Assembly: GCF_963853765.1 (NCBI RefSeq)
Contig: NC_088855.1
Span: 3,038,001 to 3,102,000, forward strand
DNA length: 64,000 nt
From: Magallana gigas
Taxonomy: Eukaryota
Direction: 5' to 3'
The notes below the pieces were generated by a model. It was not told the origin of the DNA and searched no databases. It was given only the letters and a program-made list of their open reading frames with translations. The translations under genes were made by a program, and so were the position numbers. Below are positions 55,794 through 57,746 of this stretch, piece after piece. Within the stretch, counting starts at the first letter, position 1. Every line of letters begins with the position of its first letter.

Positions 55794-57746
55794 TTACAAC
55801 TCCCCGTGTTTCTTGTTTCTTTTGTCCAGAAGATTTTGAACGTTGAGCGTATCACCGGAGTTTACAATCCAGCCTTTGTCTTCAACATTAAATCCACTGA
55901 AATTATCTGGCACTTCAAACACCGTGCTCCAACTCTGACCCTCGTCACTTATTATGTAATTTCCAGTTGCGTTCCATTCATTGGGTTTGTGAACAAATGG
56001 CGGGAAACGTACGGGCATTGCTGTTTGTCCGAAGAAAGAATTGGCCAGGGTGCAGTAGTTGATCTCACACTCATCCTCAATAGTTCCGATATGTTGACTG
56101 TATCCCCCGGGGCACGACTTGGACGTAAATGTCGGCGAGAAATACTGGTTTGAAAGGGGATTCCCCTCTTGGCAACTGAAGAAACCAGCGAATGGAATAG
56201 AGTATCTCTGCCCAAGTTCAAAGTCGTCAGACAGACAAACAAACATATCCGAGGTTATCATTGTGGGCTGGTAATAGGGCGGACAGCTCTGGGACTTGGT
56301 GACAGGGTTTGAGACGGTTTTGGTAAAAATTCCGCCAAAAAGAAACCCCGAATTTGGCGGGGCCTCGCCCGCATGTGCAGAGCACCAATACGTTGAATAC
56401 GACGCTTCGCCCCTATAAACGACATCATGGCACTTTTTCCAGAAAACCATGTAACTCTCACATTCTTGTCGAATTTCGGTCTTGGTTACATTACCCTGGT
56501 AAAGTAATGTCGATTTGTAACCTTCGCCACAGTTAAAATCCCCAGTTTTCTTGTTTTTTAAGGTTAGATCATCGCATAAGTTATCGGTGTCACCAGTGAA
56601 CACACAGTTTTGGAATAAACCGCCAATACTCATGTTTTTGCCTGGTGGTTGACAAGTTCCATCGTCAATATTAGCATTGAAGTTAAAGTTGGGCGAATTA
56701 ATGTCTGTGCAGCCCTTATACGTATTAAATCTGTAGTAAGCCGATATAGCAGCCTCAATAGAATCATGTGTTTGAGCTCGAATCGAGTCCGGCATTTCTG
56801 GGAACTGTTCTTTTGTAATTAAGAAGTGCAGCGGATCCCCCGACCTGTCGGTCGCCACCAAGTCGTTCCCTATCGTATCCACCCAGTCGTTGATACTGAA
56901 GTTAACAGGCTTGTAGGGCTGTCCACCGTACGTGAAGATCGTGGAATGGGTCTGACTGGTGGCATACTGCTGGGTCATTTGGTCAGTGACAGTTGACGTA
57001 TGGCCAATTCCTGCTCCTTTGCCAAAGAAAAAAATTCCCGCTATAGCAGAGATTTGCGATCTGGTTAGTTTAGAGCTTGTGGACAATGAATTGTTCAACT
57101 GGTCAACTTTGAAAATAGAAGCACCAACATCAATGCTGGTAATCACATGGGTGCCGAAGTCCCTGACTAGTAATTGACTTTCATACCTTGCGTACCTCTT
57201 CCTTCCGTTCAAATGGTGATTGGCGATAGACAGGATCTTGGAGCGGAATCCATGATCAAGAACAGGGTTTGGTTGGATTTTAGATGTGTAGCGAACATAT
57301 CGAGCCCCGGTTCTCTGAGTAAACGAGTTGTCGTTAACCTGGTTACTCTTTACCTCGTCGTATTCCGATGAAAACTTCCCTCCGATTGAAAACAATCCAG
57401 CCACCTTTGCTTGACCTCCAACGTTGATTGTTTTTGATGTGGCTGAAGTAAAATTCATCCAATGGTCAATTCGCTCAGAGTAAATTTTGACTTGACTGGC
57501 TTTTTCGGGAACAACGAAAACATTGTCTGGGATAAAATATCGGCCATCCTCAGTCATTCCACAGTCCGAATAATTGTAAAAGACGATTCTAGCGCGGTCT
57601 TCGTTTTTCAAGTTGTCCCACCCTCCTCCCGGTAAAACTTCGAATACCATCACATCCGGGCTAGCTCTCCGGCAGTCTGAAGGAGAAGTCATACATTGCG
57701 GCAATAATAGTATTGCTACGGACACAACAACGAAACGTCCCGCCAT
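55794..57746 (-). CDS. MPEG1: Perforin-2/MPEG1-like MACPF protein, TM-less paralogue, 650 aa, intronless
   Basis: Signal peptide MAGRFVVVSVAILLLPQCMTS, FEVLPGGGWDNLKN, MACPF signature LLVRDFGTHVITSIDVGA, DRSGDPL, EGF-like GCTDINSPNFNFNANIDDGTC and a Cys-rich P2 domain. Ends LLDKRNKKHGEL* with no hydrophobic helix. Confidence 0.93.
   Translation of the reverse strand: MAGRFVVVSVAILLLPQCMTSPSDCRRASPDVMVFEVLPGGGWDNLKNEDRARIVFYNYSDCGMTEDGRYFIPDNVFVVPEKASQVKIYSERIDHWMNFTSATSKTINVGGQAKVAGLFSIGGKFSSEYDEVKSNQVNDNSFTQRTGARYVRYTSKIQPNPVLDHGFRSKILSIANHHLNGRKRYARYESQLLVRDFGTHVITSIDVGASIFKVDQLNNSLSTSSKLTRSQISAIAGIFFFGKGAGIGHTSTVTDQMTQQYATSQTHSTIFTYGGQPYKPVNFSINDWVDTIGNDLVATDRSGDPLHFLITKEQFPEMPDSIRAQTHDSIEAAISAYYRFNTYKGCTDINSPNFNFNANIDDGTCQPPGKNMSIGGLFQNCVFTGDTDNLCDDLTLKNKKTGDFNCGEGYKSTLLYQGNVTKTEIRQECESYMVFWKKCHDVVYRGEASYSTYWCSAHAGEAPPNSGFLFGGIFTKTVSNPVTKSQSCPPYYQPTMITSDMFVCLSDDFELGQRYSIPFAGFFSCQEGNPLSNQYFSPTFTSKSCPGGYSQHIGTIEDECEINYCTLANSFFGQTAMPVRFPPFVHKPNEWNATGNYIISDEGQSWSTVFEVPDNFSGFNVEDKGWIVNSGDTLNVQNLLDKRNKKHGEL

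Follow-up and report, generated by a model that had tools for sequence, protein, structure and literature searches.

An intronless gene for a soluble perforin-2 ectodomain

The window analysed here is a 64,000-nucleotide stretch of the genome of the oyster Magallana gigas (NCBI RefSeq assembly GCF_963853765.1, contig NC_088855.1, positions 3,038,001 to 3,102,000 of the forward strand), and all coordinates below are counted from its first letter unless another chromosome is named. Its minus strand carries a gene of the MPEG1/perforin-2 family whose product has no transmembrane (TM) segment and ends in the tetrapeptide HGEL, a candidate ligand of the KDEL receptor that retrieves proteins to the endoplasmic reticulum (ER). 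The open reading frame (ORF) at 55794-57746 is uninterrupted, closes with a TAA stop and encodes 650 amino acids that form an MPEG1/perforin-2 ectodomain. The gene and its parts are as follows.

55794..57746, minus strand: intronless coding sequence of the TM-less MPEG1/perforin-2 paralogue, 650 amino acids plus TAA (ORF list, Pfam MACPF, PDB matches, stranded poly(A) reads, collinear RNA contig L001)
57684..57746, minus strand: signal peptide, approximately residues 1-21, with the hydrophobic core FVVVSVAILLL (read from the translation; putative cleavage site)
56736..57380, minus strand: MACPF pore-forming domain, residues 123-337 (Pfam PF01823, 68.2 bits, E = 1.4e-18)
55941..56714, minus strand: EGF-like linker and P2/MABP domain, residues 345-602 (alignment to the PDB 6sb1 MABP-domain construct, E = 6e-65)
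55797..55940, minus strand: C-terminal region of low model confidence, residues 603-650 (AlphaFold2 (AF2) predicted local distance difference test (pLDDT); alignment with TM-bearing relatives)
55797..55808, minus strand: terminal tetrapeptide H-G-E-L (CAC GGG GAG TTG), candidate KDEL-receptor ligand (codons read directly)

The MACPF score compares with a PF01823 cut-off of 21.5 bits, and residues 25-606 could be aligned to the solved mouse and human MPEG1 ectodomains with E values of about 3e-145 (2.8e-145 for 6U23). The N-terminus is hydrophobic (MAGRFVVVSVAILLL...) and typical of a signal peptide, as judged from the translation and not by a dedicated predictor; the alignment to mature mouse MPEG1 begins at residue 25, and the AF2 model places a helix at residues 2-13. 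At the other end, 55794-55830, read as its reverse complement, gives ...LLDKRNKKHGEL and then TAA. Together with the 650-residue ORF, this confirmed the KKHGEL terminus described in an earlier reading of the same DNA, referred to below as the original prediction.

No hydrophobic segment was found by Kyte-Doolittle analysis in the last 140 residues, where the maximum 19-mer score was 0.56, compared with 2.2-3.4 in TM-bearing relatives. Because the tail is hydrophilic, a glycosylphosphatidylinositol-anchor signal was ruled out as well. Alignment with the TM-bearing relatives showed that the protein stops about 12 residues past the conserved LL that closes the ectodomain, at the start of the juxtamembrane stalk. 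In the AF2 model the mean pLDDT was 79.5, with values of 43-60 over residues 590-650 and of less than 50 at the final three residues, which is compatible with a flexible or exposed C-terminal tail. As read from its sequence, the product is a complete soluble perforin-2 ectodomain without a TM segment, predicted to enter the ER by its signal peptide.

Transcript structure and the convergent PhyH-like gene

Stranded poly(A) RNA-seq reads were mapped over 52300-58150. Reads on the strand expected for a minus-strand mRNA spanned 55632-57787, and neither these stranded reads nor the RNA contigs contained any splice joint inside the TM-less gene or leaving it. The Logan RNA contig L001 was collinear with the genome; it begins 100 nt before the ATG and extends 157 nt beyond the stop, ending at 55636, 14 nt after the AATAAATAAA signal. 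A second RNA contig (X2#7) starts at 55634, and the read depth of the minus-strand gene stops there. The 3' untranslated region (3'UTR) and the exon that faces it are as follows.

55635..55793, minus strand: 3'UTR of 159 nt, with tandem AATAAA at 55649-55658 and a poly(A) site at about 55634-55636 (RNA contigs L001 and X2#7, read depth)
55445..55632, plus strand: last exon of a convergent PhyH-like gene (opposite-strand reads; a PhyH gene is called at the orthologous loci)

The region 53599-55632 was read from the opposite strand as the 3' part of the PhyH-like gene, with five GT..AG introns whose joints in the reads include 53740/54143, 54574/54712, 54795/54880 and 55080/55445. The 3' ends of the two genes, at 55632 and at about 55634-55636, lie a few bases apart with virtually no intergenic DNA, and since they abut, no hidden downstream TM exon exists. 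The original prediction had also stated that no relic of a TM-coding segment follows the stop, and this held: no TM-like relic was present in any downstream reading frame, where the 3'UTR gives way to the convergent gene. The sequence at the stop, GAGTT/GTAAAA, is weakly donor-like and was considered as a splice donor leading to a TM exon. This candidate was ruled out by the unspliced reads, the poly(A) site and the convergent gene.

The last PhyH intron (55081-55444) contains a minisatellite at 55069-55413, consisting of 14 copies of a 25-bp unit. The unit, GAGGATATCCGAGTAAGTAACGGTA, holds a GTAAGT splice-donor-like core, and the array begins right at the exon-intron junction.

Orthologues and a single loss of the membrane anchor

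A word search identified five near-full-length TM-less relatives of 650-654 amino acids, ending in HGEL, RGEL, HREL, HSDL and HGDL. Cluster look-up assigned the RGEL sequence to Crassostrea virginica (XP_022339738) and the HREL sequence to Ostrea edulis (XP_048751219), while HSDL belongs to Saccostrea echinata and HGDL to S. cucullata. The idea that the gene occurs outside this species in Saccostrea only was overturned, as the clusters at 81% and 80% proved to be those of C. virginica and O. edulis. The gene order in C. virginica, O. edulis, S. echinata and S. cucullata is the same as here, namely a divergent TM-bearing MPEG1, the TM-less gene and a convergent PhyH. This identical arrangement in the four genomes identifies the sequences as true orthologues spanning three oyster subfamilies. 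The position of the stop codon is shared by all the oyster orthologues.

In a maximum-likelihood tree, the six TM-less sequences formed one fully supported clade nested among TM-bearing Pinctada and Mytilus proteins, and the closest pearl-oyster and mussel relatives retain the TM helix. The TM-bearing neighbour fell into a sister paralogue subclade with Pinctada and Mytilus members of its own. This placement indicates that the head-to-head MPEG1 pair is ancient and that the anchor was lost once, on the oyster (Ostreidae) stem. The original prediction had looked to other oysters and to mussels for conservation of the terminal tetrapeptide. Every orthologue found, across four oyster genera, carries the motif class [H/R]-x-[E/D]-L, whereas the mussel relatives keep their TM helix; as the pearl-oyster members of the clade do so too, the tail is comparable among oysters only.

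The match list included about 12 further TM-less MPEG1 homologues, none of which ended in xx[ED]L. No further TM-less MPEG1 copy was found in this genome, the remaining MPEG1 loci being TM-bearing or broken.

Substitution pattern of the C-terminal tetrapeptide

Within the pattern [H/R]-x-[E/D]-L shared by the orthologues, the sole replacements are H to R at position -4 and E to D at position -2, counted from the C-terminus, and position -3 varies freely (G/R/S). Synonymous changes among the orthologues occur at H (CAC/CAT), E (GAG/GAA) and L (TTG/TTA). Within species the tetrapeptide was invariant in 15/15 (this species' cluster), 14/14 and 4/4 alleles, and positions -9 and -14 were polymorphic in the same alleles. 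The ratio of nonsynonymous to synonymous substitution rates (dN/dS) was 0.06-0.16 gene-wide and 0.1-0.24 for the last 34 codons, tail included, with synonymous sites saturated between the M. gigas gene and the orthologues of other species. Directly after the shared TAA, the 3'UTR is unalignable across genera. Measured against neutral DNA, the alignment clearly points to purifying selection on the tail. The pattern of substitutions is that expected of a KDEL-receptor signal, though this sample does not amount to proof.

Compatibility of the tail with the KDEL receptor

As the original prediction had noted, HGEL does not match the PROSITE pattern [KRHQSA]-[DENQ]-E-L, which does not admit glycine at position -3. 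The orthologue tails RGEL, HREL, HSDL and HGDL likewise lie outside the pattern. In a reporter series built on AKDEL, proline alone was rejected at position -3, the residues K, R, H and N and aromatic residues were equally good at -4, position -2 strongly preferred E, and position -1 took L or F (Raykhel et al. 2007, PMC2140024). All KXEL variants, together with AHAEL, AHTEL and AHEEL, interacted with human KDELR1 like AKDEL, and human proteins with efficient non-PROSITE motifs were ER-resident in 16/16 cases (PMC2140024). Each position of HGEL fits these single-substitution data, and the combined tetrapeptides are not among the variants named in the text of that study. Structural work has shown that His at -4 stacks on W120 of the receptor and binds about 10-fold tighter than Lys (PMC8248988).

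One KDEL-receptor locus (PF00810) was detected in the oyster genome, on contig C7. Its exons could be aligned without gaps to residues 31-117 and 118-201 of chicken KDELR2, and all contact and gatekeeper residues (R5, H12, R47, Y48, D50, S54, E117, W120, R159, Y162, W166 and R169) are conserved. Since the residues of the ligand pocket are all conserved, the specificity data from vertebrates should transfer to the oyster receptor. In view of the AKDEL reporter series, the mismatch of HGEL with the PROSITE pattern is of less importance than the original prediction had assumed.

The divergent neighbour and other MPEG1 copies

Head to head with the TM-less gene lies a second member of the family.

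58204..60396, plus strand: divergent TM-bearing MPEG1 paralogue of 730 amino acids, an ancient and not a recent duplicate (tree; same head-to-head layout in four other oyster genomes)

The two proteins share 48% identity, and their lineages separated before oysters, pearl oysters and mussels diverged. A region of about 457 bp (57747-58203) between the two genes is common to both, and both showed similar read depth in the same poly(A) libraries. RNA contigs from runs X1 and X2 join 56916 to 58150 and thereby link the two paralogues on opposite strands, and loose ends at 56877 match the sequence of the neighbour. These joins probably reflect a chimeric assembly, made either over the short promoter between the divergent genes or where the paralogues resemble each other.

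A cluster of MPEG1 copies was found on another chromosome (C4: 17293910-17295731, 17474726-17476243 and 17580964-17582599). Among these copies, several have in-frame stops, end prematurely within the P2 domain or are broken into two open frames, and are for that reason probably decaying duplicates. Elsewhere in the window, a long minus-strand ORF at 16093-17289 combines a match to the PI3-kinase Ras-binding domain with a low-complexity stretch weakly resembling repeat proteins.

Comparison with known systems

Vertebrate and invertebrate MPEG1/perforin-2 is a type I membrane protein (PDB 6U23, 6SB3) that resembles the oyster protein in its signal peptide, MACPF, EGF-like and P2/MABP domains and intronless gene, with approximately 580 residues aligning. 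In contrast to this standard form, the oyster protein has no stalk, TM helix or lysine-rich cytosolic tail, and ends in a KDEL-like tetrapeptide instead. In standard MPEG1 the lysine-rich cytosolic tail drives ubiquitin-dependent trafficking to phagosomes. Human MPEG1b is likewise a soluble MPEG1 without TM helix and cytosolic tail. However, it is a product of alternative splicing that breaks off at K511 within the MABP domain, whereas the oyster protein is encoded by a separate gene and has a complete ectodomain and a conserved C-terminus.

Mammalian liver carboxylesterases are soluble lumenal proteins with HXEL ends (HIEL, HTEL, HNEL, HVEL) that are retrieved by KDEL receptors. They are unrelated to the oyster protein in family and function; no carboxylesterase variant with Gly at -3 has been described, and the oyster orthologues also have R at -4 and D at -2. 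In MANF (RTDL) and CDNF (K/QTEL), sub-optimal but conserved tails hold an ER pool and make secretion conditional, and over-expression of the KDEL receptor lowers the secretion of both (PMC4731063). These two proteins are the closest functional parallel to the proposed role of the tail in the TM-less MPEG1, and the RTDL of MANF resembles the Saccostrea tails in its basic -4, neutral -3 and D-L ending. MANF and CDNF are small saposin-like stress factors and not pore formers, and the function of the tail was shown experimentally in them, whereas in the oyster MPEG1 it is a candidate signal.

Plants store KDEL-tailed cysteine endopeptidases in ER-derived ricinosomes until they are needed. The concept of a destructive effector parked by a KDEL tail would be the same, while kingdom, enzyme class and storage organelle differ, and we know of no ER-derived storage body for oyster MPEG1. 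An ER-stored perforin-2 would also contrast with perforin-1, for which work by Brennan et al. in 2011 is said to indicate that the protein must leave the ER fast to spare the cell.

Retrieval to the ER and its rivals

We consider there to be a roughly even chance that the tail acts as a KDEL-receptor ligand of intermediate strength, holding a pool of MPEG1 in the ER and early secretory pathway. The TM helix and the cytosolic sorting tail were lost on the Ostreidae stem, and the new C-terminus has stayed within [H/R]-x-[E/D]-L ever since. Protein that escapes from the ER would be captured by the KDEL receptor in the mildly acidic environment of the cis-Golgi and carried back in COPI vesicles, and the producing cell would then keep a pool of the pore former in its ER and early secretory pathway and not secrete it constitutively. 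MPEG1 has been described as acid-activatable (PMC6753088), and the neutral pH of the ER would keep it inert; delivery would depend on leakage, receptor saturation or triggered release. Mammalian perforin-2 has been found in ER, Golgi and early-endosome fractions (PMC4626811). The gene, its transcript and topology, the orthology, the conservation of the tail and the intact receptor pocket are shown by the data, and binding, retention and a biological purpose are inferred.

A further step is proposed more tentatively, as a possibility: a tuned but leaky KDEL-receptor signal may allow oysters to maintain a reservoir of soluble perforin-2 in the ER and early secretory pathway. With such a reservoir, a lumenal retrieval tag would take over the sorting role that falls to the TM helix and cytosolic tail in other animals, and the protein would reach phagosomes or haemolymph only under certain conditions, such as receptor saturation, loss of ER calcium or cell lysis.

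Several observations weigh against retrieval. Variability in the mature protein is highest over the last 30 residues, with 37% invariant columns compared with 68% overall, and among the last four residues the final Leu alone is invariant across the orthologues. In an LG drift simulation, amino acids were evolved from HGEL on the observed tree and all six sequences were required to keep [KRH]-[not P]-[ED]-L; retention of the motif class was obtained with p = 0.26 at the gene-wide rate and p = 0.07 at a local, doubled rate. Conservation of the tail beyond the local background is accordingly at most suggestive, and the constraint on it could be structural. The fit of HGEL, RGEL, HREL, HSDL and HGDL to the receptor was pieced together from single-position data on human receptors. 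Asp at -3, which pairs with R169 of the receptor as a salt bridge (PMC8248988), is replaced here by Gly, Arg or Ser, and that contact is forfeited. The AKDDL reporter, with D at -2, was localised to the ER in somewhat more than 20% of cells (PMC2140024). Since Asp at -2 alone cuts ER localisation in this way, the Saccostrea tails HSDL and HGDL may be weak. A literature search returned no localisation data for the TM-less paralogue, nor any oyster plasma or haemocyte proteome naming it. The ER-retrieval reading of the original prediction is partly supported, in that the protein is TM-less and expressed, the motif class is kept, position -3 is tolerant and the receptor pocket is intact, but the tetrapeptide itself is not clearly conserved above its local background.

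The main rival, nearly as probable as ER retrieval, is a constitutively secreted humoral perforin-2 resembling a pre-shed ectodomain. Folding, packing of the L-domain or oligomerisation would then account for the constraint on the tail, and any resemblance to KDEL would be coincidental or too weak to count in vivo. Soluble forms of MPEG1 exist and human MPEG1b is secreted, other TM-less homologues have no KDEL-like end at all, and the conserved LLD[KE]RN just upstream of the tail points to a structural role of the region; tail conservation that is not significantly above the local background, the D at -2 in two species and the lack of an acidic residue at -3 count on the same side. Against it, a rough estimate from residue frequencies suggests that a chance C-terminus fits [KRH]-x-[ED]-L about once per several hundred proteins, all replacements at -4 and -2 stay receptor-compatible with position -3 alone being free, and such motifs are highly predictive of ER residence in human cells (16/16, PMC2140024).

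An assembly checkpoint is improbable by comparison. The soluble subunit would co-oligomerise with the TM-bearing neighbour or with itself, unassembled monomers would be retrieved, and rings with buried tails would move on to phagosomes. The common divergent promoter region of about 460 bp, the similar read depth of the pair in the same libraries, the conservation of the pairing across Ostreidae, and the 16-mer rings of MPEG1, in which the C-terminal L-domain contacts the neighbouring subunit, would all suit such a role, whereas partners that are only 48% identical and whose lineages are older than the split of oyster, pearl oyster and mussel speak against it. Least probable by far is an artefact or decaying gene, that is, a nonsense-truncated pseudogene or a mis-read gene with a downstream TM exon spliced at the GT of the stop. 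The resemblance of GAGTT/GTAAAA to a weak splice donor is what would suggest it. However, no joints leave the gene, the poly(A) site lies 159 nt past the stop with the convergent gene next to it, the ORF is intact with a gene-wide dN/dS of 0.06-0.16, and the same stop codon is used in five oyster lineages. Artefact, pseudogene and alternative splicing are excluded as explanations.

Significance for perforin-2 biology

Perforin-2 is thought to need a membrane anchor and a ubiquitinated cytosolic tail to reach bacteria-containing vacuoles. What appears to be new here is an MPEG1 with a changed topology and a candidate lumenal retrieval tag, and a search of the available literature found no paper on the TM-less oyster paralogue, nor one that describes a MACPF effector with a KDEL-like tail. 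Should the tag prove inactive, the gene would still be a clean example of a humoral, full-length soluble MPEG1. If it does work, it would represent a new way to control a self-dangerous effector and provide a concrete marker for oyster immunology, and if the ER reservoir is real, no KDEL-tailed MACPF effector would have been described in animals before this one. As a long-conserved, oyster-family-wide paralogue without anchor or cytosolic tail, the gene offers a natural experiment on the anchor-free storage and deployment of a pore former.

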